DNA from: Ascidiella aspersa
Lineage: Eukaryota
Assembly: GCA_963924565.1 (NCBI GenBank)
Contig: OZ004610.1
Coordinates: forward strand, 9,424,001 to 9,488,000
Direction of reading: 5' to 3'
DNA: 64,000 nt
Shown piece after piece: positions 22,936 to 56,112 of the stretch (within the stretch, counting starts at the first letter, position 1; the number at the start of each line of letters is the position of its first letter). The position numbers were made by a program, and so were the translations under genes. A model generated the notes under the pieces. That model saw nothing but the letters and a program-made list of their open reading frames with translations. It was not told the origin of the DNA and made no database searches.

Positions 22936-25118
22936 ATGAGAAAGAATAACTTACCAAAGAAGGTATAGTTAGATGTTTAATATTTTCTGATACGGTACGG
23001 TATGTACATTTATAAAGGATCATTTATATTACAATTTTTTAGAAATTGTCACGCAAATATCTACACAAACCTGGGGGAAGCCAGACAAGGTCCCTTACCA
23101 CGATTCCGGATAAAGGTGAGTTGTTTGTATTATATCTCTAAGGATAATATAGGCTGTAAAACCAACTCTAAATTCTAGGACCATCTTTGATCTACAAAAC
23201 TCGATTTGACGTCGGCAGTGAGAAGTATCAAGAACGACAGGTTCACCGATCGGAAAACATGGCAAACGGTGAGCCGTAAAACTATATACTGTATTGTGAA
23301 AGTATAAGAAATAAAAATTTTATTACTACGTCCTATTTAAGCATTAAATCAGACCAGGCATAAATTGCAAGTTATGGCCTCTTGCTGGTAAAAAAAATTT
23401 AATTGCAGAACACTTAAACTTTGCTTTTTGTTACGAACTAGCACTTAACCTCACCTATTTGAGTTCATGTCTGCTGATATATTTTGTATTGCTGAATGCG
23501 TGTATTTTCAGGCGAAGCAGTGTCTTCGGCACGGAAACTACTGGATTACCAAAGCTATGCTTCGGAGAACCGAGCTACAAAGAGCGCGCCTGCGCTTTTC
23601 GACCACACTATTCCTAAAGCGGATTCAAAAATGGATTATGTTAATTCTACGATTGGATCTTTCAATCAGCAGTGGCTACCTATAAAACAACCCGAAGACT
23701 TAAGCACGCAGATTTCTCTTGTAACTGATGTTGTAAGAGAGGATACTAAGTTGAAAGAGTTGCGTCATGCATTGCTAAATGGGCCGAAGAAAAAAGCCAA
23801 GTTCAGTGCATTTCCAGTGTCAGATATTGATCGTTTGATTTCCAGCCGTTTTTTTGGTTTAACTGCTGATCAGCCCAGTTCACCAACAGATTTTATAGTC
23901 AACCCTAAATCTCCTCTGGGCCCTATAGTCGACCGGTCGTCTTGTTCTTCTTCTGTATCACAAATAGGTTTACTTAAAACGCCAGATCATAGTACAACGC
24001 TTAGCACTGACTTATCCTTAGAATACGAAAATTTTGACCAAATACCTTGCAATGCAAAAAACAATAATACAGCCATGCACGATTTAAATCACGCAATACG
24101 ATCTGGTCATGTAAGCGAGGATGTCTTGAACACAGTTGATGACGTGTTACCGCGAGCAGCAGTCTGCTCCGAAAGTACGATTCTGGCGGCTGAACTATCG
24201 AGCTCAGATGATATTGTAGACACTAATTCGAACAGAACAAGTCTCGACGATCTAAGTCACAGCAAAACCATGGAAGAAGTCGTTGTTTCTTGTTTGGAAA
24301 AGCCAGATGTCGAATCGCATACGACATACAAACGCAAAACTTCCTTACACGAGAAGCTTGAAGATGCTCATGGTAGCCCAACAGCGAAGTGTCTTGAGCG
24401 ACAGAATGCAGTGGATAGCAAAATACTGAAGGTTGTGAACAAGGGAACTTCTACAGATCGTGTTGAGGTTTCCGCAGCTGAAACACAAACTGAACAGATG
24501 GATGTATCCACCGTGGCCATCCAAACAGAGCCCCAAAACCAAGCAGTTTGGCATACGGAAGTCAATTGCCCTGCAAAAATTATCAAAACTCGTACCGTAT
24601 CAACTCAAACCGAGCCCATCGACTATCCGGATCACAAGTGTTTTTTAGGCAATGAGTATGAGATAGTCTTGCGAGATTATGGCAGGATTTTGTACCGAAG
24701 AATCACGACCGAGAAGGAGCTAGACTTTAGGGAAGTGTTGCACGCCAGTTTCAATATCTCGGGTCTATTTCCTACTCCCCCGAAAGGCGCCTCCCCCCGT
24801 AATGTATTACTTGATAACAAATCGACCAAACGTAGAGTTTCGGAGCAACCAAAAACGACCGTCGCGGCTTTGCCGGCGAAATCAATGCACCGCAAACCAA
24901 CCCGGCCGAAGCGAAGTAGTTTGAAGTTTAATGAACACAAGCCAAAAACCCAAAAACCCAAAACGAATACGGTCCGAGAAAGAAAGTCAGAAATGCCGCG
25001 GCGTGAAAAAGTGGAAGAAAATTCGGAGGATCACGACAAGTCTACGATTTTGGAGCAACTTCGTGCGCTTTTCGTTCGTATTCGAAGCAGACCGAAGAAG
25101 GATTTCGATTGTCTTTGA
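22936..25118 (+). CDS. Uncharacterised ~600 aa, probably disordered protein with clustered TQT/IQT motifs and a basic C-terminus
   Basis: Exons 22936-22962 (MRKNNLPKK), 23043-23115, 23179-23268 and 23512-25118 join in frame with phases 0,1,1 and canonical GT-AG. The last exon is the 540-aa ORF. S/T/D/E/K-rich, no domain recognised. Confidence 0.8.
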
Positions 25119-27311
25119 GTCATTTTAAAGTGACGTAAAAACTAAAGGATAAAAAGACGGTCGTACGATCAAATTGCATGTTCTGATTTGAGTAAATGCT
25201 TCAACAATATTCGTGTTTTGTACGCGTGTACATTGTTGACGTGTAGCCTATACAGTTTTTATTCAACTCAACATTTTCCCCACATTCTACATTGACGCAT
25301 TCAATATCTAACCTACATTATTTGTTATATTACAAAACTTTGCTGCTGGGTGGAACAAAACATTTTAATTTGTCAAGATAGGCAAACAATCTACTATAAT
25401 ATTTAGTTAGCTTGACAAATGGAAAGGCGCGACTGCTTTAAAGTTTAAGCCAGTGCTCCGCAACCTTTTTACAAAGCCTAATTTACGCAGTATACACATA
25501 GAAAAAAAAAGAAATACGCTATATGACAATTCACACATTTTATACATCTTTAGAATAAGGCAGCCTAGAGTAAAGAAGCGTTTTATGGTTAAAAGGCGGT
25601 TTGGGGTCAAAATTTTAATTTTTTTATATCAAATTTTGCAATATCCTGAAACATCACCCGTTTCTTAAAATCTGAGACTAACGGTGGTTCCCCGTATATA
25701 GCAGGTCAGGTTGGATTTAATAAAAATGAATTTTTAAAATTATGTGTTTCGCCGTGGTACACCTGTTGCGAAGCACATGTTAAAAATCAGTCATGTCTAA
25801 TAGACTATGTATTGATAGTATTGATATTACTACGTCTCAGTAATCCGCTTAAAATACTCAAAAGTTTAAACGTACTTCTACATACTTCTTCATGCAATGA
25901 ATTTATTCAGGCAATACATTTTTACAAGATTTTAACACGTAATCTTAGCAGTGGTCTGACAAAACACTTTTGCAATTTACATAAAAATATCTTCAAAAAT
26001 ATGACCTCTAAATTACCTTTAAAGGCGCATCCGACACAATATAGTTTTAGTGAATTAGTATAGGTAAGACACAGTTCGGATAGAGTGAAAAAAGTGCTTC
26101 GTTTAAGTGCAATCACATTACGTCATTATTCGGACACAATTTCGGCAGTATCTGATGAACACTGGGACACAATTCGAGTAAAATTTGACCTTGCAAAGGA
26201 TGCTTCTCAGTTCACAGTTACAGAAATAGGTAATTGAGCTTCTTTTGTTTGTAACTGGCGTTTATTGTTTGTTGCGTTCTGAAAAGTATAATAAAGATAT
26301 CAGATAAGTTACCAACAAAATAAAAAAATGTTTATGCAGCAGCAGCAATATTATTTCAAGAAGTAGTCACCAGCATAACGGCAAGCATAATACCACCTGA
26401 TGAAATAACAACACAGAAAAAAAAATTTTAAATAATTTTTAAAGTTGGCCAAATTGTATTGAGCGTTTACAAAATGAAATCTCGTTTAAACAGTTTTTTT
26501 GAAAACTTTGCTACATCACAAAACCAAAAAACATCAAACTACAAATTTTAAATCATCAAGTCATTTAAAAAGTCAGCAGTGGTTCTCAACCTGTGAATCG
26601 CGTATCACTAGTAGATTACGAAGCCCAGGTGCAATACGCGAGCAGCTTTTTAAACTTATAAGTAGGTTGCTAAACCTAGCGTGGATTTTAATATTATTGC
26701 GGCTGTCGTGAGGCATACCCTCTCTAGAATATTAAATCGATATATTCGAAAATTTGCGGCCAGCGCTTGGAGCAAAAGTTTTTTTTTAATTGATTATTTC
26801 GGTTTTGTATATAGGCATAAGTAAATAAAAAAACGGTTTTATTTGAAACCAGGTAATACACATCGAGAGTTCAAAATTATTAAGGAGCAAGGTTGTAAAT
26901 AAGTCATTTTGAAATGACTTAAGTCCCAGTCAAGTCATTTGTAAAAAAACTCAAATCCAAGTCAAGTCTTTTTGAATGAATAACTAGTCAATTCCAAGTC
27001 AAGTCCTTGTCATAAAAAATACACGTTTTCGACCGAACTATGAGCAATACCTCAACTAACACATACCAAAACCGCAATATACGGCAAGCAAGCTGTTGTA
27101 TATGAAAAAAATTAGAATAAATACAAAATTAAAAAAAGTGTTTATTGTTTTTAAAAAAAAAATGCTAAAACACTTTTCACCTAATTCATTTGTCTAGAAG
27201 ACTTAAAAGTCAAGTCAAGTTATTTTTCCCAAAAAGACTTAAGACAAGTCAAGCCATTTGAAACTAGCCCATGGAACAAAAAAGGCGGGTCAAACATCAC
27301 CTAAAAACCAA

Positions 27312-40500: not shown

Positions 40501-43500
40501 TTAGCATTTTAAATACTCCATCCTGAGACTTGCGTATCCATGGTAAGAAGCCACGTAAAGCCGAAAGTATCTTGCGGTTAAGGCTGGAATGAACGCGTTC
40601 ACCTTGTAGCTTTCACGATTGTTGTTCCCGACGAAAATCTACAATCATGTTTTGTGCGTATAGTTAGTTTACAGTTTACACCAATGATATTATTTATACA
40701 CGAAATTCAAGTTCCTAATTTTGCTCTGGAGACGTTAAATACGTATTATCATTACGTTTGGCTGCAACATAGTTATTAGAAGTTCGTAAACTCTTGTTAT
40801 TAAACAATATGCTGAAAACTGTATTTCAACAACAAAATTACAAATGAAAATTTATTGCGTCCCGCCGGGACGTTTTTAAGTTTGTCTTTCACCGGCAACT
40901 AAAAAAGGTTGTTATATCTAGATTAAGACTGTTTAACGTTTTTCAACGATATACCATGGTAGGTAATGCGACATCGGGCATAAGCTTCCCTCAAAGCTCA
41001 ACAAGATTTGACGGTCAAAGTTTAATAACAAAAAATACCTCTGAATACACCCCAGCTGTACGTCACCGGTTTACCTTGTCTGTTCCTTGTGCATTTTGCA
41101 CAAAGTTTAAGGAAGAAGAATCGTTGCCGTAGGATATCCGGAAAGAGGTGATCCACTGATCGTTGAGCCTTCTTCCTTGTGTTATTATTCCAGTAATTTT
41201 GGTTGGTGATCCCAAGTCCACCTGAATCCATTCGTTCACTTGACCTGTTTTGTGAAATATTCGACGGTATAATATTTTACGTGGAAATCATGTATTTCTC
41301 CGAATTGGCTTGTTTGATAAAACAAAGTTTTGCTTATGTACAGTGTGTATTTTATCAACAAAAAATTACAGACGCAATCAAGGATCGGCTTCGCTAAATA
41401 GAGAGATTAAAAAAACAATATTAAATTATACTACGTAATTCCGAAGATTTTGCTTCTCACTGTTTTATAAAACTACTTTTAGAATCGAATTTTATTACAA
41501 AATAAACCTAAAACAGATTCTAGTTTTTACATATCAATCTTAATCTGCTCATTTAGTTGACGTTAAACAGTTTCGTGATGATACTACGTAGTGCTCTGAC
41601 GCCATGCTCGCACGATTAAATGTTTACAATTCTTTGCTTTCATGCCGTACGAGCAAAACCATAAAATCAACACAAATAATTCAAAATACCATGTGTTAGT
41701 ATAAAAAAACAAAACTTGAAGGCTATACTTTACACTTAGAGCTCGTTTATAAGTACTCCACGAAGAGTGAAAGTTACCTTAACGAGTTGTTCACAAACTA
41801 CATGATGTAACGTATAATACCGTTGCCTGCCGCCCATATTCCTTTATCGCTCGGTGAATTGTTCGGGTTATCCAATCGGGCCAAATGAGGACCGTGGTCT
41901 GCATAACTGTTCCAATATGATGATGCTGAAAAAGCCGAATCCGAAAGCCCGCCACTTTTAATGCCGACAGAACACGTTTCTGGGAATACATTTAATGGAT
42001 TCTAGCTATGGTAATGACCAATGGTATGTAGTCCCCCACTTCATTTGAATTTAAGTACATGTATACGCACACACCTACGTATGATGCAGTTATACTTGTT
42101 TGGGGTATTGCCAATCCGGTTGTATGGTTTCTCAAAAAATCCTTATGTGCGGTTTAGTACTACAAGGTTAAAATAACTTAACTTAAACTTATTGTATAAT
42201 ATTTATTTGAAAAACAGGAGCCCAAGGCGGGAAACTAAAAAATGGAGTGTAACACAAAAAGGTTAACCTCCTGGTATAAAGTATAAACAAAAAAATTCAA
42301 CTTTACCCAACCTATTCAGATTAGTTTCACAAAAACGGCCTTTAAACTAAAATGTTATGGCTGTTGCATAGCTTTACGTATGGCAAGAAATATTGCAATA
42401 TATGTCATGTTATACCTCGGTTTTGACTGTACTCGAAGTAAATCTTGGATGGCATTAATTCGTTGTACAAATCTAAACACACAAAAAACAGTAATAATAA
42501 TAATGTTAATTGGTAACTTATTATGGTATGTTAAACTAATTTTACTGACCTTTATATTAACCATGAAAACACTCATATTAACTATCAAATATGATGTATA
42601 CCAGGTACAAATATTCTTAGCAAGTCCTTTAATTCACCTACAAGTTTATAAATATTTTGAGAAAAAACAATTTCTAAAATTTTTCCCTCGGTAAAGATTT
42701 TCTTTTTCTTTAAGCATAAAAGTGTTAAAGCAAAATGTACGTCACACCTCCAACACATGATTGTCACCAACCTTTCAAGCGATTTATTTCGTTTTGCTGC
42801 TCGTCTTGTCTTCTATCATTGCAAACGCAAGGGCCTGGAGGTCCTACGTCACCTTTAGGGCCCCTTTGACCCGTCGGTCCTCTCTTACCTATAACAACGG
42901 CATTAGGCTACTTGCGCCAAATAACAATGACCTACAGTTGTTTTATTAAATTATAAGAAACATTTATACTCGTATAGCGGTGTGTTTGGATGCCTGGTAT
43001 ACTTACTGTTTGTTTTCTCATAAGGGTAACAGAGGTTTTTCGGTAAAACCTAGCTTACGCTTGTCCGATCCCAGTTAAATTATGTCATTTTTATGGCCAA
43101 AAGTGTTTCTTTGTATTTCAGTGTATTATGTTTTTCAGCTAATTACGCCAAAATTTTGAGAAGTTAAGTTATCTTCGAGTTTTAAAGTAATACAAATGCA
43201 TTGATCGTTCGAGGTAGAAATCTCTTCGTTGGATAGCAACCCATTGCAAAAATGCATGAACTCAGTTAATTTGCCATAAATCACCCTAGTATGAGATAAG
43301 CATCGATGATAACACTCGGTTTTGGACATCGTCTTTGCTTCGAACCAATAGAACAGGGATGGCGAACCTTTTAAATGCGCTGGTTTGCCATCCCTGTAAT
43401 AAAACATCCCTAGCATCCCTGTAACAGAACAATAATAGCAACCCAATAAAACATCTCCAGCAACTATGTACAGCGAAGATAAGCAAAAGGCGGGGATGGA

Positions 43501-43707
43501 TTTAACAAGGTTTAAACCCGTTTATCAGCGCCATGACATGCTTTCTCGTTTACCAGGACGAAGTGTCGTAGCATTCCTCTTGGTATATTCTCGTTGTCGA
43601 ACAGAAACGCATACATCGAAATCGCCTTCGTCGTAAGCACAGTGGCAAATTGTGCAAGACAAATAAAGCGCCAAAATAAACAACACAAATTTCAAAGTAT
43701 GGGCCAT
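40501..43707 (-). CDS. Secreted collagen-neck-discoidin (F5/8 type C) protein, copy A, complete, 264 aa
   Basis: Exons 43707-43554 (signal peptide, DFDVCVSVRQR), 42888-42772 (GKRGPTGQRGPKGDVGPPGPCVC plus neck), 42472-42416, 41979-41821 (CSVGIKSGGLSDSAFSASS...ARL...IWAAG), 41244-41075 (EWIQVDLGSPTKITGIITQGR...WITSFRISY) and 40638-40501 (IFVGN...ARYFRLY...SLRMEYLKC*). Total 795 nt, open, canonical splice sites, textbook FA58C motifs. Confidence 0.9.
43354..43396. mobile_element. 43-bp minimal hAT MITE
   Basis: cagggatggcgaacc...ggtttgccatccctg flanked by caatagaa/taataaaa. Absent from the homologous position in copy B (~51613). Confidence 0.75.
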
Positions 43708-44116
43708 AGTTTTAGTTTTATTATTCTAAGAAACTGGTAAATAAAAAGCCACAAAATAGTTACATTCTTTCTGCGATTTTTGAAAGAAACAGTATCTGGA
43801 CTCTAATACAAGAGAGTTGGGTAACAATGAGCGAATGGTAAGGTGCCACGTGACCATGGCCCCCTACATTTTTTGCTAAAATTTTAACTATAGGTAAATG
43901 GAAAACTTTTTTCCGCTTCGCATAAACCGTGATTGTGATAATAATATATCTTAAACCATTTTAATAAACTTTTTTTTAGCTTAGTCATCGTGGGTCTCAT
44001 TGCACCATCGAAAATGAAAGTTTTGTCAACTTCAACAATATAAAGACGTTTAGCCTACGCTTTGCAGCATTTTTAAAATGTAGATTTTGTATTAAAAGTA
44101 AAACCCAATGTTGCAA

Positions 44117-44372
44117 TGACTTAAGTTAATAACAAGTGCGCTTAAGTCGCTGTTTTAAAATGACTTGACTTAAGTGTTTTGATAAAAAGGACCTGACTTG
44201 ACTTAAGGCTTTCGGGCAAATGGCTTGACTTGGACTTAAGTCATTGTGTCAAATAACTTGACTTGACTGGGACTTGACTTAGGCAACTGGTGACATGGTC
44301 TTGGCTGGTTACTTTAGCGGGACTTGACTTGAACCTAAGTTATTTCAAAATGACTTGTAAACAATACTGGCA
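44117..44372. repeat. GACTTGACTT / CAAGTCAAGTC minisatellite-bearing repeat (opposite-strand relatives at ~26900-27010, 27200-27260, 27710-28030)
   Basis: Dense degenerate gacttgactt units. Lies in a segment absent from duplicate copy 2. Confidence 0.7.
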
Positions 44373-45221
44373 ACACCTTTCCGAAAACTTAAAAATAAAC
44401 GAATTGGTGGAGTTCTTAAAGTAACTTCTTTAGGTCGTTACGTTTAAATGCACAAAAATATTCCCGAACAAAAATTCGGACCTGTGCTAAGTGGATACTA
44501 GTGAAACGTTTGTAAGGTACAATAAACAGCTTAATAGCTGTTTAGGCAAATTCTGGTTTATATATATCCTACAAAGATTTTCGGTAATAAACAATAATAA
44601 CCTATTATTTTTGCTTCGCTCAGACCGCGCTGGCCCGTGAGCCGTAGTTGGACGAGCCTTGCATTATAAAGGTGATCAATTGAATATATAATATTCTATA
44701 ACACAAAGCAAATATAGCTTCTTATTGTATTGATTACCATCGTCTGTATCTATCTTTCTTGCAAAAAAGCGCCTCTGTTTGGTACCGTTGTGTGCGATTT
44801 ACTGTAAACTAACAGACCTGCGGTATGCTGTTAAAAACTAAATCTAAACCTGCTCTTCGAACTAAATATATTAAAATAAATAGAAACCCTGACTCGAAGA
44901 AACAAAAATAATGCAGACCTGTACGCTGCTGTTGAAGCCTATTTTTGGTTGCAATGGTTATGTAGGGCTACTATAGTGAAAGGCTATACTAATGCTAATA
45001 GCAATTCTATACAACTCGTATATTTAAGTTCATTCTTGGTTGTTTTTACTGTAATTAATGAAGACAGCGATATCGAACAAATTAATTATACTCTTTTATT
45101 AAATGTTAGTGGCTGTATTTGAAAGTAACTTGAGTTTCGATAAATGTTTTAGTCTATACTACTACCTAGCAGCTGCTGATTTTAATCATCCACAAATCGT
45201 TAAGTTGACTACACTCTAAGT

Positions 45222-45855
45222 CAGGGATGGTGGACCTTTTCATCGCACAGGTCAAACCAACACGACCCCAAACTTTACAAGTGCACAAATGGCTCATATA
45301 TTTAATTATATGCTAGTTTATGCGAAACTTTGCTGCTGCTTCGTTTTGACTGTTATCGCCTGGGTTGGTAATCAAGGTTTTGTACGATTTTTCAATTCGG
45401 ATTCTCACAGATATTAAAACCTAAATAGTTAGGCCTAACAATGCTACATCAATTTTTATGGAATTACAGGAATTCAGCAGAAAGCTTTTCAGCATGGTTT
45501 AACCAGGATTTTCAGAACATTTTAGTCTACGAGCTCTGGGATCGCCACCCTTTACATATTACAGCGATCAACAAAATGCTTTTATATAGTTGTCTGCTTT
45601 TTGCACGCATTTGCTTATAAGCAGTTAACGTACACCTATACTCAAAAGTCTTAAAACAATTTTGCACGACTTACAGATGGGCAGCCCCGATTAAACAGTA
45701 CAGTGCTACCTAGCGAAGAATTTATTTTTACATTTATCATTTCCTGAAAATGATTGATAACTTTTCTATATTTCTAGAGAGACAATCTAAGTGGGTCATT
45801 AAAAATATGTGGTGGGTCACTTTGTGACCCACGGGTCAGTGGTTCGCCATCTCTG
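45222..45855. mobile_element. hAT MITE in the spacer between the duplicate copies
   Basis: Ends cagggatggtggacc / ggttcgccatctctg, with ctaagt repeated on both sides. Confidence 0.65.
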
Positions 45856-46465
45856 CTAAGTTGACAACAATAGTGAGTTTAACGAAAAAACTTACATCAT
45901 CTTGTTAATTGAGTTACATAAAAAAAGAATAATCCTCTTCGTAAAACAGTAGAATTGATATTTATTGACTTTTTATTTAAACTCTGGAAATTACGAACAT
46001 GATAGCGAAAAAAGCTTTAACATCAAAAGTACTGCTCGTGTTAGGAACGTATATTACAAAGCTTTTTTATTATATTTTTAGATAACCGTTTTTGAATAAC
46101 AAAAAATCAAATAGTATTAGTCCACCACACACTTACTTTTTAAATAACCGTTTTAGGAAATATTCAAACATACAATGTACCTGGAAAACGTTTTGGTGCT
46201 TGTAATTGTCAAAGGTAGTTCATTAATAATAAAAACACCAAGGCTTAGACATAGCTAGATTATAAATAGCAATTTAAACCATTTAAAACAATTTTAGTTG
46301 CGGGAGTGAAATTTGGTGATATTGAAGCAAGTTGTAAGAGCTTACTTCAAAATCTAAACAGTACCGTAAACAGTCATTTTTACAAGCAGAACAAAACCTA
46401 TGCACAGCTTCCTTATTATTACATCACACAGCACTATGAATACGTTTTGCTGTTGTTAAACTACC

Positions 46466-46643
46466 AACATTTCACGATTGCTGTCGGCTGTTGCCGGCCT
46501 GGATGTGTCGTTTTCATTTTGAATGTGAGTGTTGGATTCTGATAAGTCAGCAGAATGTTGGGTTTTGGCATGTTCTTCTTCGCTCATCGGTAAGCCTTCT
46601 TCAATTTCCGTTGCAGCATTTTCTTGGGGTATCGGGACTCCAT
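46466..46643 (-). pseudogene. Duplicated, frameshifted copy of ERICH6 exon 1
   Basis: Close match to 38181-38360, but ATGGAGTCCCGATACCCC has an extra C versus ATGGAGTCCGATACCCC, shifting the frame from the ATG to an early TGA. No downstream ERICH6 exons were duplicated. Confidence 0.8.
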
Positions 46644-46808
46644 TGCAACTAGCTAAAGACATCCGGTAGCTGGGGCGTTGACTTGTACAGATTTTTCAAG
46701 TATTATAGATATATCTCAAGCACTTCGAAATTATGAAAAAATTAAATCCAGATCACTACAGTAGGCCTACTAATAAAAAGCAAAGTCTCTATTGAGGTTT
46801 CTATAGGC

Positions 46809-47706
46809 CAGTGGTTCTCAACCTTTTATGCTTCGTGGCCCCCTTTGATAGGCTCTCGACCCTCGTGCACCCCTGCTTATAAAAATACCTAGCATTGCAT
46901 TTACTTGTTTTACTTCTCCACGTCAGTAACAAATACAGCCATTAAACCAGGGATTCCCAACCTTTTTTAGTTGACGACCCACTTTTAAAGCAAGTTTTAT
47001 TGTGCGACCCACAATGAAATATGACCAAATAAACAAAGTTACATAAAACCTACATCTTTTCCGCTGGCGAACGTACTGAAATAGTTAATGCAACACAACA
47101 CATCTAATTTTTACCTATCTGTGATTTGGTGCATAAATGTAACGTTGTTCCCGATCTAATAAAAAATTGTAACATTTAGAAATGCTTTCGCGACCCACAT
47201 TGGTATTATGTGACTGCTTCATTGCAGTCATAAATACGAAAGTACGCCTGACGTTTTCACGCCAATCAAAGGTTTGAACTTTTCCGCGATAAACTACCCA
47301 TAATATTTCTAGCAATAGTTCTAGAAAGTTTAACTGGTGAGTAGGGATCAGCAAAGTAAAAAACACAGGTATTCTACAACAATAGGTTTTGAATCTAGAG
47401 TAACGAATCCAGAATTGCGAATCCTAATCAGTTTTGAAATTATTTGACAGACACTTTTAAGGCGAGAGGTTATCGGCCAGTAATTGGCCGTCTGAAAAAT
47501 CTCTAACGCCACATATATGCCTGCGTTTGAAGCACCACGGTAATTGTTTCGCCACTGCGATACTCGGCGTTAATTCAAACTTTTTCGATAAAACGAATAA
47601 ATTATATCGGTTCTAATTATCTGGCATAAACGACAGAAGTTTTGTAATACCATGACCTAGCTTGAGAGTTATCAGGGGGGCCAAGGGCCACGGTTAAGAA
47701 ACCCTG
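46809..47706. mobile_element. hAT MITE with a nested second element starting cagggattcccaacc at ~46948
   Basis: TIRs cagtggttctcaacc / ggttaagaaaccctg, TSD ctataggc/ctatagac. Ends are homologous to 39553-40401. Empty site at ~38527. Confidence 0.88.
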
Positions 47707-48395
47707 CTATAGACTTTGATAAAAAGTAACAATATCATCCTAAATTTCCTACCGCTGATCTTTATTAAAATCCTTCGTTCAAAGAATAATAAGGACAAAT
47801 ATTTATTGATAAATGCAATTGTTATCATGACGTAACTTCGCAAAGTTCCTACTGTTTAGTACGATTTATGCATTTGGTACGATTTATGTAATCGTTTTGT
47901 TTACGATCAGCGACAGAACTAAACGTAAGTGAGTGCATAGGTGGAACAAGCTTTTGTTTCTTCTACATAAAAATGTGATGTAACTAACGTACCCCACTCT
48001 TTTTAATTTGTTATTGAAAAACTACGCCCGTTTTCAACCTACTGGCTTGGTGAAGCCTGATTCAGCGCAATGAGCACAATAATAAAAACGAAATATTATA
48101 CTGGCTTGGCATAGAACTTGACATATGCGGTTATGCTTATGCAAAGTGGAGCCGCGTTTGCAAAAACTGGTAGACACTATATGCAGGTGCAAACATCGCA
48201 CTGAATGCAATTCACTGCTAAAACAAAATTGAAGTTTTTGTGCTAGTTTGTTAAATTCAAATTTATATGCTAACTACAACTTCCTAAAGGCAATCATTTT
48301 GGTGCAATCTGTAGCCACCATTCTCTGGAATTGTGTATAAATTTCTCATATTCGATCGTGTTACTTTGTTCCAGCATTAATTGAAATATTTTTCG

Positions 48396-48622
48396 TATCT
48401 GACACAAAATGTGGTCGCAATGTACATTCTGATTTTATTTTATTCAAATTGGGCTATCTATTTTATTCAAATTGGGGTATCTGACACAAAATGGGGTCGC
48501 AATGTAAATTCTGATATTATTTTATTTAAATTGGGCTATCTATTTTATTCAAATTGGGGTATCTGACACAAAATGGGGTCTCAATATAAATCCTGATTTT
48601 ATTTTATTCAAATTGGGGTCGC
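48396..48622. repeat. ~82-bp tandem repeat near a hAT-like terminus
   Basis: tatctgacacaaaatg recurs at ~48396, 48478 and 48560, followed by ggttgaagaccacta. Confidence 0.8.
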
Positions 48623-49474
48623 TTGTTATAAAGGTTGAAGACCACTACTATAGCTGGTCAACAGTGGGCTAACTCATAGCGGTTAACGGAGACGTATTAT
48701 TTCACCAAGCTATTATAGCATTAGTATAGAATAGATCAGGTACGAAAAGACTTGCATTAACAAGAAAAATATAGGTTTAAATGAAAAAACTGTTTTCAAC
48801 CCTTAGTGAAAAACAGTCGTAAGTCTGTTACAAGTGTGAACTTTAAACTAAGTTACAACAAAATACTGCGTAAAGTTTCGGCCGATACATAAAAATACCT
48901 GAACTTTTAGTGTGTATTTGATAAAGTTACACTTTTTCACCTAACGTTCTAAACAACTTGAATTTTAAACAAGCATTTATAGAAAGTTTCGTAAATTTTC
49001 ATGTACTTTTCTAAGCTTGATCACAGTAGGCCTACAAATTTTGCTTCCCACGAGTCTACTCGGATTATTTGTTTTCTGCCCTTCTGTTTCCACTTTGGCA
49101 TTACAGTTATTTGGCGATTCATTACATTGTTCCTAACCAGAAATACCAGGAAAGTTTAACTGTAGTTCAAATTGCAACTTAATTTCTGTAGCCACTTTAT
49201 ACTTTCCTCAAATGTTTTGGTATACCTAAACGTGGGTTATAAGTTTATTATTCTATCAAGCGAGCACATACATGTAAAAGAGCAATGCTTTATCACATAT
49301 AAAATTGCTGATTTAACTTATTGTTTTACTAATAATAGGCTTCATGTATATTGTGTAAAGGCTTATGTGGTTTAGTTTAAATTATTTGCAAACACAGAAA
49401 GCAATTATATTTACAACACAGAAAACATCAATTCGGTGCACTGTTACAAATTCTTTGTCGTTTGTTTTTTGTAA

Positions 49475-51899
49475 TTAACATTTTAAATACTCCATCCTGA
49501 GACTTGCGTGTCCATGGTAAGAAGCCACGTAAAGCCGAAAGTATCTTGCGGTTAAGGCTGGAATGAACGCGTTCACCTTGTAGCTTTCACGATTGTTGTT
49601 CCCGACGAAAATCTAGAATAATGTTTTTGTGCGTATAGTTTACTTTACACCATTGATATTATTTATATACGATCTTCAGGTACATGTTTCTAATTTAAAA
49701 AAAATTCATTGCGTCCCGCCGAGACGATTTTAAGTTTGTCTTTGACCCGCAACTCAAAAAGGTTGCCGATCTTATATATAGATTAAGACTGTTTAACATT
49801 TTTCAACGATATACCATGGTAGATAATGCGACATCGGGCATAAGACTCCCTCAGAGCTCACTAAAATATGACGGTCAAAGTTTAGTAACAAAAATGCCTC
49901 TGAATACACCCAGCTGTACGTCACCGGTTTACCTTGTCTGTTTCTTGTGCATTTTTCACAAAGTTTAAGGAAGAAGAATCGTTGCCGTAGGATATTCGGA
50001 AAGAGGTGATCCACCGATCGTTGAGCCTTCTTCCTTGTGTTATTATTCCAGTAATTTTGGTTGGTGATCCCAAGTCCACCTGAATCCATTCGTTCACTTG
50101 ACCTGTTTTGCGAAATATTCGACGTTATAATGTTTTACGTGGAAATCATGTATTTCTCCGAATTGGCTTGTTTGATAAAACAAAGTTTTGCTTATGTACA
50201 GTGTGTATTTTATCAACCAAAAATTACAGACGCAATCAAGGATCGGCTTCGCTAAATAGAGAGATTAATAAAACAATGCTAAATTACCGGACGTAATGCC
50301 GAGGATTTTTCTCACTGTTTTATAAAAACTACTTTTAGAATCGAATTTTATTACAAAATACACATAAAACAGGTTCTACTTAATACATATCAATCTGACG
50401 TTAAACAGTTTCGTGATGATACTACGTAGTGCTCTGACGCCATGCTCGCACGATTAAAGGTTTACAATTCTTTGCTTTTATGCCGTACGAGCAAAACCAT
50501 AAAATCAACACAAGGAATTCAAAATACAATGTGTTAGTATAAAAAACCCAAACTTAAAGGCTATACTTTACAATTAGAGCTCGTTCATAATTACCCCCAA
50601 AAGTGAAAGTTACCTTAACGAGTTGTTCACAAACTACATGATGTAACCTGTAATACCGTTGCCTGCCGCCCATATTCCACGATCGCTCGGTGAATCGTTC
50701 GGGTTATCCAATCGGGCCAAATGAGGACCGTGGTCTGCACTTCTCCAGGATGATGATGCTGAAAAAGCCGAATCCGAAAGCCTGCCACTTTTAATGCCGA
50801 CAGAACATCTTTCTGCGAATACATTTAATCGATGCTATGGTAATGACCAATGGTATATGCAGAAAACTACCCGTCTTCATTTTAATTAAAATATATGTAT
50901 ATGCACACACACATACGTATGATGCAGTTATACCTTAATACGTTCGAGGTATTTACAATGCTGTGATATGCTTTCTCGAGAAATCCTCATGTGCGGTTAT
51001 ACAAAAAGGTCACTAAAATAATTGTATAATATTTATTTGGAAATAAGAATTCTCAGGCGGGTCACTGAAAATGTGTATAATACAAAAACGTTAACCTCCT
51101 AGTGTAAAACGTAGATAACAAAAATTCAACTTTACCAAAATTATTCAGATTTGTTACATAAAAACTGTCTTTATTAGGCTAATCTATGGAGGTTGAACAG
51201 CTTTACCTACAGTGGCTAGAAATATTGCAACATATGTCACGTCCTACCTTGGTTTTGACTGTACTCGAAAAAGATCTTCGATGGCATCAATTCGTTGTAC
51301 AAATCTAAATGCAAAAAACACGGAAATAAGAAAAATGTTAGTTCATTGTTATGGCCCAAAATTGTTCGAATTGTTTTCCAGTTTATTATACTTTCCAGGT
51401 TATAAAGCCAAAATTTGCTAAATCTTATAGAAGTACAGTTGTCTTCGGGTTTTAAAGTAATGCAAATGCAATTATCTTTCGAGCTAGACATTTTGGATAG
51501 AGACCCATCGCAAAAATGCGGGTAATAATCAGTTAATTAGCCATAAATCACCCTAGTATCGGACGAGTATGGATGATAACACTCGATTTTGGGTATTGTC
51601 TTAGTTTCGAATTAATAGAACATTCCTAGTAACTTGTAACTATACATTTACTGTCTACAGCGCAGATATGCAGCAGTCGGGGAAGGATTTAACACGGTGA
51701 AACCCGTTTATCATCGCAATGACATGCTTTCTCGTTTACCAGGACCATTTTCAGGTGTCGTAGCATTCCCCTTTGTATGTTCTCGTTGTCGAACAGAAAC
51801 GCATATATCGAAATTGCCTTTGTCGTAAACACAGTAGCAAATTGTGCAAGACAAAAAAAGCGCCCAAATAAACAACAAAAATTTCAAAGTATGCGGGAT
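49475..51899 (-). pseudogene. Collagen-discoidin copy B: intact linker and discoidin exons, ATG changed to ATC, collagen exon deleted (pseudogene, or the 3' half of a gene started by copy C)
   Basis: Exon 1 homologue 51899-51740 begins ATC CCG CAT ACT TTG versus ATG GCC CAT ACT TTG in A, with an in-frame TAA just upstream. About 575 bp including the collagen exon is missing at ~51340. Exons 51304-51248, 50812-50657, 50102-49933 and 49612-49475 are open with intact splice sites. Confidence 0.75.
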
Positions 51900-53754
51900 A
51901 CTTCTTGTTTGATAAGTTTAAGAAACTGTTAAATAAAAAAAACACAAAATAGTTACATGTTTTCTGCGATTTTGTTATGCCAGGGTGAATAAACCCCCAA
52001 CGCAAGAATGTTGCTTGAGAAACAGTATCTCGACTTCAATACAAGAGAGTTGGGTAACAAGGGGCGAATAATAAGGGGGCCACGTGACCATGCTCCCCCA
52101 CGAAATAAACGAATTTGTGGTGTTCTTAAAGCAACTTATTTTTGCCTTTACGTTTTGATGTACAAAAAATAAAAATCCCCCCGAAACAAAACTCCTGGAC
52201 CTGTGCTTAGCGGGTACTAGTCAAATGTTTGTAAGGTGCAATCTTGTTTATGTTAAGCAATAGATCACCGTCACCAATTTATTTTACAAGAGGTGGATAG
52301 CTATACGGCCTGACGGTATAAAAATTGCGTGTCGAACCTTATTGACTTGATTTTACTTATTAAACGAAGGGAATACAACATAATGTTAAACAAAATATAC
52401 AGCTTAGGCTACTTGTCGTTTAGAAATTCGGTTCACATTTGAAACCTACAAATATTTTCGTTATTAAGCAAGAATAACCGTATTTTAGCTTCGCTTATGC
52501 TCCCCTGGTTATATCTGGCACGTCAGCCGTAGTTGGATGAGCCTTGCATTAAAAAAATTATTATACACTATATCGCGAAGCAAACACAGTAAATACAGCT
52601 TCTTATTAGATTGATTCCCATCGTCTGTACTTCTCTTTCTCACAAAAACGCCTCTATTTGGAAGCTTACCGTTGTTTGCGGTTTACGGTTAAAATAACTG
52701 ACCTGCGATCTGCTGTTGAAAACTAAGTTTAAAAATGCCCTTCAAAATAAATATCAAAATAGAAACCGTGGCTCAAAGTGAGACAAAAAACGTGTAGACC
52801 TATGTTGCTGTTGCAGCCTACTTTTTGGTTGTGTAGGGCTAGCCTACTGTGGAATGCTACACACCCCTTTTTGTCCAGAATTTTACAGTAAAACTATAAT
52901 TCGGAGAGATTCAAGTATCCAAAACCGATGGAAGCTTATATGTAGATAACGTTTTAAGTGTTTAGAAGTCTATTTACCTAGGGGTGTTCAGCTGGGGGTA
53001 CAAATTGCAAACAAAATATGACGTCATCGTAAAATTGATTTTAACTCTGTACTCCTACCTAGCGGTAGCAATATTTCCTAAAACGGATATGGTCAATCGA
53101 CACCGGTTATACAGACTGTCTCGCGGGCACTATACGGGCACTGTTAAAGCAGCGAAACAGATTCCGCCAAAGGAGTACATTCTGCTTTGGAACGCCAGAC
53201 ACAAGTATGTTAATACTTACGGCCGAAACCTAAACATCTTCCCTGCCATCGGCTGTTATATGCAATTTTGAAAACTGTCCAATATGTTTTTACAAGCCTT
53301 TAGATTTGTGTATTTCTATTTTTATTATTAATTCATAATTATTTCTTTGAAATGTATCATATCACTCTGAAAAACACGTACTACGGCATGTAGCGGCTAC
53401 AGGATGTTATGGATTCTAAACTAAAAGCTAACATTCTATAACCTTGTAGCCCTAGTATGGTTTAGCTCGTTTTAAGAGAATCGTTGCTCAATTCTATAAG
53501 ATTTACAAAATTCCACATTGTATCTCATGCGACCCTTTGTAACAAATTGCCCATTCTGGGTTAAATGTTCAAAAAAGTATTTTCAAATGTAAAATCATTT
53601 TTTTCAATTGTAATATCAATACAATATGTCAATTGCAGTCTTGGAATTTTAGGAAAATCATTTTTGAAATAAAAATACAACTTATCGGCGTCTTTCATCC
53701 ATTATGTCACAGTTGTGCGCACAAATGTTGGGCGTAGATATCGCAGCTGCAGTC

Positions 53755-54622
53755 TGGGGGAGTTTCTACTGCTCTGTAGTGAAATGTGCGCAAAAATGTG
53801 CGCACATTTTAAAATAACTTCAAAATGTGTGCAGTTTTTTTTCACAATGTGCGCACATTTAGAACTGCCTTCAAAAATGTGCGTGCTTTTTTCAACAATG
53901 TGCGCACATTTAAAACTGGCTTCAAAAAAGTGCGCACTTTTGACAATGTGCGCACATTTAGAACTGGCTTCAAAAATGTGCGTGCTTTTTTCAACAATGT
54001 GGGCACATTTTAAAATATCTTCAAAATGTGTGCAGTTTTTTTTCACAATGTGCGCACATTTAAAACTGGCTTCAAAAATGTGCGCACATTTAAAACTGGC
54101 TTCAAAAATGTGCGTGCTTTTTTCAACAATGTGCGCACATTTAAAACTGGCTTCAAAAAAGTGCGCACTTTTGACAATGTGCGCACATTTAGAACTGCCT
54201 TCAAAAATGTGCGTGCTTTTTTCAACAATGTGCGCACATTTTAAAATATCTTCAAAATGTGTGCAGTTTTTTTTCACAATGTGCGCACATTTAAAACTGG
54301 CTTCAAAAATGTGCGCACATTTAAAACTGGCTTCGAAGAGGTGCGCACTTTTTTAACAATGTGCGCACATTTTGAACTGCCTTCAGAATCTCCGCACATT
54401 TTTAGGTTAGAGTCATCGTTAGGGTTAGACTTAGAGTACAGAGTTTATCTAACTCTAACTCTAACTCCCAAAACTCTTACTCTAACTCTAACTTGAAAAT
54501 GTGCGCACATATTTAGGGCATTTTAATATGTGTGTACATGATGAAAAAAAGGCAGTTCAAAATGTGGGCACATTTTTTGCACATTTTTGCGCACATTGTG
54601 CAAAATAACGCCACCGTCCCCT
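53755..54622. mobile_element. Foldback-like element built from an internal minisatellite (AATGTGCGCACATT core)
   Basis: Long left array of AATGTGCGCACATTT(T)AAAACTGGCTTCAAA-type units, a TTAGGG/TTAGAG...CTCTAA centre and a short inverted right arm. A partial second copy lies at 60960-61118. Confidence 0.75.
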
Positions 54623-55296
54623 GTTGCAGGGGTGGCGAACCTTATTATAGAATGGGTCACAAATTATACTACATCTCCAAAAAAAGAAACACAAGTGAAA
54701 TTACATATAACCTGTAATGAACTTGGCGCCGTATCTTCTACACAAATAATATTATCCATGTCTGGTAATTCATGAATTTATTTGGATTATTCCGTGTGAT
54801 TGACTTTATCAAATTATTTTGCAAACACCAGGATTTGAACGAATTTTGAAATCAAAGAAAGTTAAAAGGATACAACAAATTCAATCATGGTGTCAATCGA
54901 ATTTTCTAGAAAGCTTTACGCTATGAGGATATGTTTTCACCATGAATTAAATAATACTTAACAATATTTTTTTACAAAGGTTTAATAAAACATTTATTCT
55001 TTAAAAATATATTTGATTATATTTGATTTTTTGAAAAGCAAATTTGGCCCCTGATAACTTAAGTTGCCAAGCGTCGTTATTTGTTTTGTTATGGGGTCGG
55101 AAAAACAAACCACTGCCACAAAAAAACTCTTTAGAATTATCACATTGAAAGCCAAGTATAGGCCTATATTTAACTATATCGAGTATTTTAAATTAAATAT
55201 TACCTACCGTATTAAAAAACACCTAATGTTTTCTCAGGATGACAGTATAGTTTGAAAAGGAACGAGTAGAAAAAGTGGTAGGCCTACATTAATAAA

Positions 55297-55298
55297 TG

Positions 55299-55338
<40 letters not shown>

Positions 55339-55508
55339 TGTAGTTGTGCTTGTATGAGACCGTACGTGTTAATGTGCGTGTTGTGTGTATGTGTGCGTGT
55401 TGTGTGCATGTGTGCATGCGTGCGTGCGTATATGTGTGCTTGTATGTGACTGTACGTGTTAATGTGCGTGTTGTGTGTGAGTGTGTGTGTCTTTGTGCAT
55501 GTGCACGT
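55297..55508. repeat. (GTGC)n/(GT)n microsatellite
   Basis: Perfect GTGC run followed by degenerate GT repeats with an internal duplicated ~45-bp block. Confidence 0.92.
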
Positions 55509-55606
55509 AGACTTAATAACGAGTGCTTAATTTTTATAATATCAAACCCTGTCTTAAATTTAAGATATTGAGCGACATTATAAATTTTATTACAAACGCA
55601 ACCAAC

Positions 55607-56112
55607 CTTTCGAGCGATCTATCTCGCTTTGCATTTCATCAAGTCTCTGCTGGTCGCAAACGCATTCTCCTGGAGGTCCAACGTCGCCCTTGAAGCCCCT
55701 GGGACCCCTTGGCCCCACTTTACCTGCAAGAATTTACTTATTTATCACGAAAACGACGACTGGAATAAATATAATACTTTTAATGTCAAAATCAAAGACC
55801 AAAAGCCAAGTAAAAAGTCAAACACATGATTAGACGCTTTTCGAAGGAAATTAAAAGTATTATTCAGGCAGATGTTGTATTTGTATTGAATTAATCACTA
55901 ACATGGTAACACCCAACGCATACACATATACTTCACTTACCAGGACGATTTTCTTGCGAGGTATCATTAATTTTATTTACCCTTGGCGAATCTCGTTGGC
56001 GCACTGAAACACAAACATCGAAATCGCCTTGATCGCCAGTAGAGCAAAGACATACGGTAGATGAGAGAAATACAGTCAAAATTACCGACAACGCGATCAC
56101 AACATTGGACAT
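55607..56112 (-). CDS. Collagen-discoidin family copy C: signal/Cys exon plus collagen-neck exon, no discoidin exons of its own found
   Basis: Exon 56112-55941 MSNVVIALSVILTVFLSSTVCLCSTGDQGDFDVCVSVRQR...RP(G) with donor gtaagt. Exon 55723-55607 GKVGPRGPRGFKGDVGPPGECVCDQQRLDEMQSEIDRSK has the same 117-nt length, phase and gttggt donor as in copy A. Confidence 0.8.

Follow-up and report, generated by a model that had tools for sequence, protein, structure and literature searches.

A tunicate gene family that joins a short collagen stalk to a discoidin head

Here we describe gene A, a gene of the tunicate Ascidiella aspersa that encodes a short collagen stalk carrying a single discoidin domain. 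It lies in a 64,000-nucleotide stretch of contig C4 (G000:C4:9424001-9488000 of a 308.6-Mb assembly; hereafter the window, and positions are those of the window unless a contig is named). The architecture is real, conserved and expanded in this genome, and it is a variant of the defence-collagen plan with a discoidin head. Defence collagens have three classical types of head, namely C-type lectin, fibrinogen-like and gC1q domains. On the reading that we lean towards, gene A belongs, as an intact gene, to a tunicate multigene family of secreted, collagen-stalked discoidin proteins, which we propose to be soluble recognition, agglutinin or opsonin molecules.

Gene A and its encoded product

Gene A (copy A, in relation to its duplicates) is an intact six-exon gene on the minus strand at 40501-43707, and its exons are listed in Table 1. 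They sum to 792 nt, or 264 codons, exactly the length of the 264-residue spliced model given in an initial annotation of this DNA. The introns are GT-AG throughout, with phases 1, 1, 1, 1 and 0. All searches and structure predictions reported here were made exon by exon, and the spliced coding sequence was assembled only to check frame and length. The window region has about 36% G+C, and the family genes in it are on the minus strand. A bacterial or contaminant origin was considered and is excluded by the GT-AG introns and the 35-Mb contig.

The N-terminal part of the product is a hydrophobic, signal-like stretch followed by E-G-D-F-D-V-C-V-S-V-R-Q-R, with an N-A-T sequon. Exon 1, which is conserved in 17 genomic matches, has no Pfam match, and its 3' end reads ..RPG with a split glycine codon (phase 1). 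The stalk (GKR GPT GQR GPK GDV GPP GPC, then V-C) is a run of seven Gly-X-Y triplets ending in CxC. The neck, DEQQNEINRLK/DLYNEL, arises at the splice between exons 2 and 2b (slash) and is formed of polar-to-hydrophobic heptads; a proline ends this stretch, and a linker to the head follows. The discoidin domain opens with a cysteine and closes with a cysteine directly before the stop codon. The initial annotation had read a signal peptide, a cysteine motif, seven triplets with CxC, a neck and one discoidin domain in copy A, and we found every element where it had been placed. It had also described DFDVCVSVRQR as identical in copy C; we read this motif in 55941-56112, and copy B has the variant NFDICVSVRQR.

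Upstream of gene A, a dispersed repeat (44161-44364) matches 26893-27260 in inverted orientation, about 17 kb away, at 76-85% identity.

The family across the genome and its copies in the window

Exon 1 of gene A has 17 genomic matches and exon 2 has 18 strong ones, and together with matches to exons 4 and 5 they make up four clusters of contig C4 (7.73-7.76, 8.43-8.57, 9.46-9.52 and 26.86-26.92 Mb). The family has at least 17 loci on C4 and about 23 paralogous loci in the genome overall. We extracted 17 loci and mapped their exons, and modelled 19 loci by local splicing, of which 14 are intact six-exon open reading frames (ORFs) of 253-267 residues; in some models an alternative donor 6 nt upstream was picked automatically, which leaves frame and intactness unaffected. 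The collagen exon has a length of 117 nt in 16 copies, where it is preceded by AG, begins with G-N completing the glycine codon, and is followed by GT; the exon 1 donors all read ..PG/gtaa... Every glycine of the seven triplets is kept across these 16 copies, the exception being a decaying copy, C'' (described below). The first and last cysteines of the discoidin domain (in E-T-C-S-V-G of exon 3 and in Y-L-K-C-stop of exon 5) are present in all aligned paralogues. Because this exon set recurs at no fewer than 17 other loci (at least 17), with glycines, cysteines and splice phases conserved, the architecture of copy A is not a product of chance.

At six distant loci (on C5, on C7 and at C4:1.29 Mb), one exon encodes the signal peptide, a cysteine motif, four to eight Gly-X-Y triplets, G-x-C-x-C and heptads, and discoidin exons follow. 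Their cysteine motifs are, for example, C-D-D-N-I-F-M-T-I-E or E-I-C-L-S-I-R-Q, and at one of these loci (L020) the closing motif has a single cysteine, G-I-C. Since the distant loci share the plan, it is older than the C4 family.

Two further copies lie in the window (Table 1). Copy B (49475-51899) is a duplicate of A, about 86% identical to it at the DNA level, introns included. Compared with A, it has lost 574 bp, the collagen exon included, at a junction near 51343, and the stretch 42511-43085 of A has no counterpart in B. Fragment C consists of exons 1 and 2 only, both intact, with no discoidin exons of its own; downstream of it come repeat DNA and then copy B. The initial annotation had proposed a locally duplicating cluster. 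The duplicates are indeed present, but within the window only A is complete, with B lacking both the collagen exon and the ATG, and C being a 5' fragment.

A second block, A'-B'-C'', lies just outside the window and is preceded by an intact C-type gene, C', which, like copy B, also matches the Pfam discoidin family F5_F8_type_C. The deletion of the collagen exon is common to B and B', and the truncation is common to C and C''; it follows that the C fragment, B and A were copied together, as a single block. B' (L010, G000:C4:9502700-9509000) has kept its ATG and has an open, collagen-less frame of about 225 codons. C'' (also L010) has lost the DVCVSVRQR motif in frame and has a Gly-to-Cys change in the helix. 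Clearly broken copies include B, C'' and a further locus, L017. Between B and B' we counted 22 nonsynonymous and 2 synonymous changes, compared with a ratio of 0.45 for A and A', and copy B evolves without constraint. For C and the intact C', the ratio of the proportions of nonsynonymous and synonymous differences (pN/pS) is 0.36-0.40. Given the B/B' counts, the motif loss and the Gly-to-Cys change in C'', the B-type copies and the 5' fragments (C and C'') are probably decaying.

Alternatively, fragment C and copy B could be one gene, starting at 56112, in which exons 1 and 2 of C are joined to exon 2b of B by a splice of about 4.3 kb, exon 1 of B is intronic, and the product is a 269-codon chimeric ORF. 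The phases match, with exon 2 of C ending and exon 2b of B starting in phase 1, the splice sites involved are all intact, exons 1 and 2 of C carry no defect, and the pN/pS of C against C' points in the same direction. However, in view of the defects of the sister-block C'' and the excess of nonsynonymous changes between B and B', neither half of the chimera looks constrained, and its intron would exceed several-fold the range of 0.3-2.2 kb found at this position in the intact models. We consider such a chimeric gene doubtful.

Table 1. Exons of gene A and of its copies in the window, with the repeat array between fragment C and copy B (window coordinates; slash, splice site)
Feature	Position	Strand	Content
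Gene A exon 1 (e1)	43707-43554	-	ATG at 43707, signal peptide, DFDVCVSVRQR Cys motif, NAT sequon; donor CCTG/gtaaac
Gene A exon 2 (e2)	42888-42772	-	117 nt, phase 1-1; 7 Gly-X-Y (PGKRGP start, G-P-C-V-C end) and first half of neck
Gene A exon 2b (e2b)	42472-42416	-	57 nt, phase 1-1; second half of neck (DLYNEL) and linker to head
Gene A exon 3 (e3)	41979-41821	-	Start of discoidin domain (first Cys), two hypervariable loops
Gene A exon 4 (e4)	41244-41075	-	Discoidin core (WIQVDLG...TQGR), third variable loop
Gene A exon 5 (e5)	40638-40504, stop 40503-40501	-	End of discoidin domain (LRMEYLKC) and stop
Copy B exon 1 remnant	51740-51899	-	ATC in place of ATG; NFDICVSVRQR retained
Copy B exon 2b	51248-51304	-	Splice sites and frame intact
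Copy B exon 3	50657-50812	-	Splice sites and frame intact
Copy B exon 4	49933-50102	-	Splice sites and frame intact
Copy B exon 5	49475-49612	-	Splice sites and frame intact
Fragment C exon 1	55941-56112	-	ATG, signal peptide, DFDVCVSVRQRD motif; ends ..NRPG, phase 1
Fragment C exon 2	55607-55723	-	7 Gly-X-Y (PGKVGP start, G-E-C-V-C end) and neck
Tandem repeat array between fragment C and copy B	53791-54404		Periods 30, 51, 99 and 231 bp; palindromic core AATGTGCGCACATTT

The tandem array between fragment C and copy B (53791-54404) generates long spurious ORFs on both strands. Directly downstream of exon 2 of fragment C, at 55297-55503, there is a GTGC/TGTGCG-type microsatellite with a 90-bp repeat, which sits where the missing 3' exons of fragment C would be expected.

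The stalk and the head beside known systems

Against the Pfam Collagen profile (PF01391), exon 2 of gene A gave an E-value of 7e-4 and 19.7 bits, below the cut-off of 27.2. The stalks of true collectins of the same genome score 21-22.7 bits, likewise below the cut-off, and the low score thus reflects length rather than sequence. We reached two collectin genes through weak exon 2 matches on contig C6 (L024, G000:C6:23302500-23309500, plus strand; L025, G000:C6:23312000-23319000, minus strand). In both, the first exon encodes a signal peptide, a cysteine segment, a seven-triplet stalk and a neck, and later exons encode C-type lectin domains with E-P-N; these are ordinary collectins. Their stalk reads A-R-P-G-K-Q-G-P-K-G-E-R-G-S-D-G-L-R-G-P-I-G-P-S, so seven triplets is a normal length for this lineage. 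The collectin stalks have the same length as those of the discoidin family and start with RPGKQGP, compared with RPGK[RMV]GP in the latter. They differ in that the collectins lack the G-x-C-x-C closure of the helix, whereas the C4 discoidin family has this closure and a separate 117-nt collagen exon. This likeness of the stalks, judged from their sequences, is the strongest argument that the discoidin proteins may work like collectins. There is also precedent for short stalks in rotifer C1q-like proteins, which have short collagen regions with nine glycines (PMC8878817).

We modelled three copies of the 38-residue peptide encoded by exon 2, and obtained a complex score of 0.40, compared with 0.03 for the best control. 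The mark used for such models is reached by 21 of 30 proteins solved as same-chain pairs and by none of the 23 solved as single chains. Contacts agreed between runs to at least 94%, with a predicted local distance difference test score (pLDDT) for the partner of at least 78. In the model, contacts are continuous over residues 1-23, where the closest pairs are offset by 0-3 residues, and have a spacing of three to four residues over 26-38; the former is compatible with a staggered triple helix, and the latter with the pattern of a coiled coil. The model supports, but does not show, association of the stalk exon as a trimer. Trimer prediction had been suggested in the initial annotation, and for the stalk exon by itself the predicted trimer scores above its controls.

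Exon 4 matches F5_F8_type_C (PF00754) with an E-value of 2.6e-13 and 50.6 bits (cut-off 28.2), and exon 5 (E = 1.2e-4) adds profile positions 86-126. Both a Collagen and an F5_F8_type_C match had been expected from Pfam; run exon by exon, the latter is above its cut-off, but the former is below. An F-type lectin head was considered and rejected, as PF00754 outscores PF22633 and the classical FA58C motifs are present. The closest solved domains to exon 4 are neuropilin b1, lactadherin C2 and the C domains of factors V and VIII (E-values of 1e-9 to 1e-7), followed by retinoschisin (1.5e-6).

The plan of MBL comprises a signal peptide, an N-terminal cysteine segment, a Gly-X-Y stalk, an alpha-helical neck and one C-terminal head (PMC10855846). 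Read from the spliced exons, the order of parts in gene A is the same as in the collectins (MBL, SP-A/D and CL-11), but the collectin head is a C-type lectin domain and that of gene A is F5_F8_type_C, with Lectin_C found only in the separate C6 genes. As a C-type lectin head defines the collectins and the family has none, it is placed outside them. Ficolins and C1q likewise have a collagen stalk bearing trimeric globular recognition heads, yet these are fibrinogen-like or gC1q domains, not discoidin. Their stalks are also much longer, at 11-27 triplets.

Retinoschisin (RS1) resembles the predicted product of gene A in being small and secreted, with an N-terminal, cysteine-bearing oligomerisation segment and a single discoidin domain with a similar core. 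Upstream of this domain, however, it has the RS1 domain, in place of the cysteine motif, collagen and neck of gene A, and it contains neither collagen nor a coiled coil. It is the RS1 domain that assembles this protein into octamer rings held together by disulfide bonds. Lactadherin C2, factor V/VIII C1 and C2 and neuropilin b1 and b2 share with gene A the terminal cysteine pair and the motifs W-x-Q-V-D-L, T-Q-G and L-R-x-E, but they belong to multidomain proteins without collagen, and their ligands (phosphatidylserine and C-end-rule peptides) are not transferable to the family.

A search with exon 4 across 1.84 billion representative proteins returned 1952 matches, of which we inspected the best 150. 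Most of these 150 are multi-discoidin proteins, none is more than 56% identical to the query, and a single one, the metagenomic protein P0063 (1109 residues), combines Collagen with F5_F8_type_C. The source of P0063 is a set of short metagenome contigs, and it has five discoidin heads and long runs of collagen, without the cysteine motif, G-x-C-x-C or neck; at 37% identity, it does not belong to the same family as gene A. Searching a protein-cluster atlas with exon 4 found generic discoidin clusters only. A word-indexed protein search found no homologues of the L022 stalk exon or of the L025 collectin frame, which is uninformative given its word index and length filter, and its single match to the exon 4 frame of L006 (P0160, a mispredicted 225-residue protein) is equally uninformative. 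The initial annotation knew of no characterised protein with this architecture, and we likewise found no description of a protein with collagen and a discoidin head in the open-access literature, full texts included.

Proposed function and its alternatives

Pooled over 13 genes, the ratio of nonsynonymous to synonymous substitution rates (dN/dS, Nei-Gojobori) is lowest in the Gly-X-Y part (0.14), followed by the discoidin core (0.19), the neck (0.26) and the loops (0.47), at a synonymous divergence of about 0.5-0.9; the loops are defined as the four stretches of the discoidin domain where column entropy peaks. Across seven close pairs that are independent of one another, loop pN/pS is 1.46, compared with 0.34 for the core (Fisher p = 1.6e-4). 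These ratios show the collagen part to be under purifying selection. A conserved stalk with varying, presumptive binding loops fits the pattern expected of a fixed scaffold with a variable recognition surface, and the concentration of variation in the loops fits a recognition head.

The mechanism that we propose follows the order of the chain: a signal peptide, the D-[FY]-D-V-C-V-S-V-R-Q-R segment, seven triplets starting with P-G-K-x-G-P and ending with G-x-C-x-C, the neck and the discoidin domain. The neck, of about 2.5 heptads per chain, would act with the cysteine knot to put three chains in register, giving a short triple helix that presents three discoidin heads. Through the N-terminal cysteine, trimers may be joined into larger bundles. 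Multivalent binding of a glycan, a lipid or a matrix ligand would then fall to the variable loops of the heads ('spikes'), so that the proteins, by analogy with collectins and ficolins, would serve as soluble recognition molecules, agglutinins or opsonins. Secretion, the binding of a ligand and a role in immunity or complement are all inferred, with trimer formation taken from the model only, and the proposed function is suggested solely by the anatomy of the protein and the evolutionary pattern of the family. The body plan put forward in the initial annotation (N-terminal cysteine, collagen, neck and one discoidin domain) is supported by the gene model, the approximately 23 loci, purifying selection on the stalk, the trimer model and the collectin stalk.

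Several points weigh against this proposal. Inclusion of the collagen exon in the mRNA is deduced from its conservation alone, and a collagen-less form with an ATG and an open frame exists in B'. For a stable triple helix, a run of seven triplets is very short, and the Pfam Collagen score is below the cut-off. The trimer model may have passed through its memory of solved collagen, and its calibration is on two copies, not three. The excess of loop pN/pS over 1 in the seven close pairs is not significant (p = 0.17), so relaxed constraint and diversifying selection are inseparable here. Finally, there is no orthologue from other species among the best 150 of the 1952 exon 4 matches, a result that says little about other tunicates, as single-domain orthologues below about 65 bits fall outside these 150.

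The proteins could instead be structural or adhesive matrix components (of the tunic, basement membrane, adhesive papillae or clot), in which the head binds collagen or a matrix polymer, as in discoidin domain receptors, and the collagen and cysteines serve cross-linking. Discoidin domains of other proteins are generally known to bind collagen or matrix, and G-x-C-x-C beside a triple helix resembles the knots of fibrillar and FACIT collagens. However, a tandem expansion to at least 20 members with variation in the head loops is more typical of recognition molecules, the length and first motif of the stalk match those of the soluble collectins of this genome, and the family proteins are small and single-headed. 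We regard a matrix role as unlikely.

Slightly less likely still, in our judgement, is a role in lipid binding, as opsonins or clotting factors of the lactadherin and factor V/VIII C2 type, whose trimeric heads would insert hydrophobic spikes into phosphatidylserine-exposing membranes (of apoptotic or damaged cells, or of sperm or egg surfaces) rather than binding microbial glycans. Lactadherin C2 and the factor V/VIII C domains are among the closest solved relatives, and the first variable loop of gene A is aromatic (Y-W..Y). Other paralogues, however, lack aromatic residues in this loop, so one shared lipid ligand does not explain the diversification, and the peptide-binding neuropilin b1 scores as well or better. 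It is very improbable that the whole family is unexpressed or decaying and its architecture a functionless accident of exon shuffling, since, despite the clearly broken B, C'' and L017, 14 of the 19 modelled loci have complete ORFs with all splice sites, dN/dS at the synonymous divergence given above is low both in the stalk (0.14-0.26) and in the head core (0.19), and the glycine and cysteine positions are conserved across distant subfamilies.

If the proteins are soluble recognition molecules, as we favour, their stalk raises a further question. In MBL, ficolins and C1q, the stalk motif Hyp-Gly-Lys-Xaa-Gly-Pro docks the proteases MASP or C1r/C1s. P-G-K-[RMV]-G-P stands at the very first triplet in A, C, most paralogues and L020, and the motif is likewise at the first triplet of the collectins; it is absent in L003 and L007. 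We take the P-G-K-x-G-P of the family to equal this docking motif, as a lead and not as evidence of MASP binding. Speculatively, the family might be a further lectin-pathway class that docks tunicate MASPs through P-G-K-[MV]-G-P and triggers C3 deposition, with the diversifying discoidin heads as its specificity set, an idea to which we give little credence at present. In ascidians, collectins resembling MBL, collagen-bearing ficolins and MASPs with the classical architecture have been reported (PMC11312191).

L003 (G000:C4:8435000-8441000) and L007 (G000:C4:8521900-8526500) are otherwise intact and lack the lysine of P-G-K-x-G-P (G-I-M and G-T-V, respectively); L003 also has six triplets instead of seven. 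As natural variants without the motif lysine, they are useful for testing any role of that residue.

If the proposal is true, a discoidin head on a collectin-type stalk would mean that the sister group of vertebrates can reuse this stalk as a cassette for oligomerisation and effector functions, and the family would offer a naturally occurring series of trimeric discoidin domains that have diversified in their binding loops. Two questions become testable: the minimum length of a collagen helix held in place by both a cystine knot and a coiled coil, and whether lectin-pathway recognition was broader before vertebrates.

Two observations fall outside the family. The longest ORF of the window (23496-25118, plus strand, 540 codons) is rich in serine, threonine and lysine. 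Elsewhere in the genome (G000:C5:19610502-19614090, plus strand), a GT2 domain (19610502-19611038) and, 2.8 kb downstream of it on that strand, a GH6 domain together make up a fused cellulose synthase, which places the genome among the tunicates; this GT2-GH6 fusion is known among animals only from tunicates.

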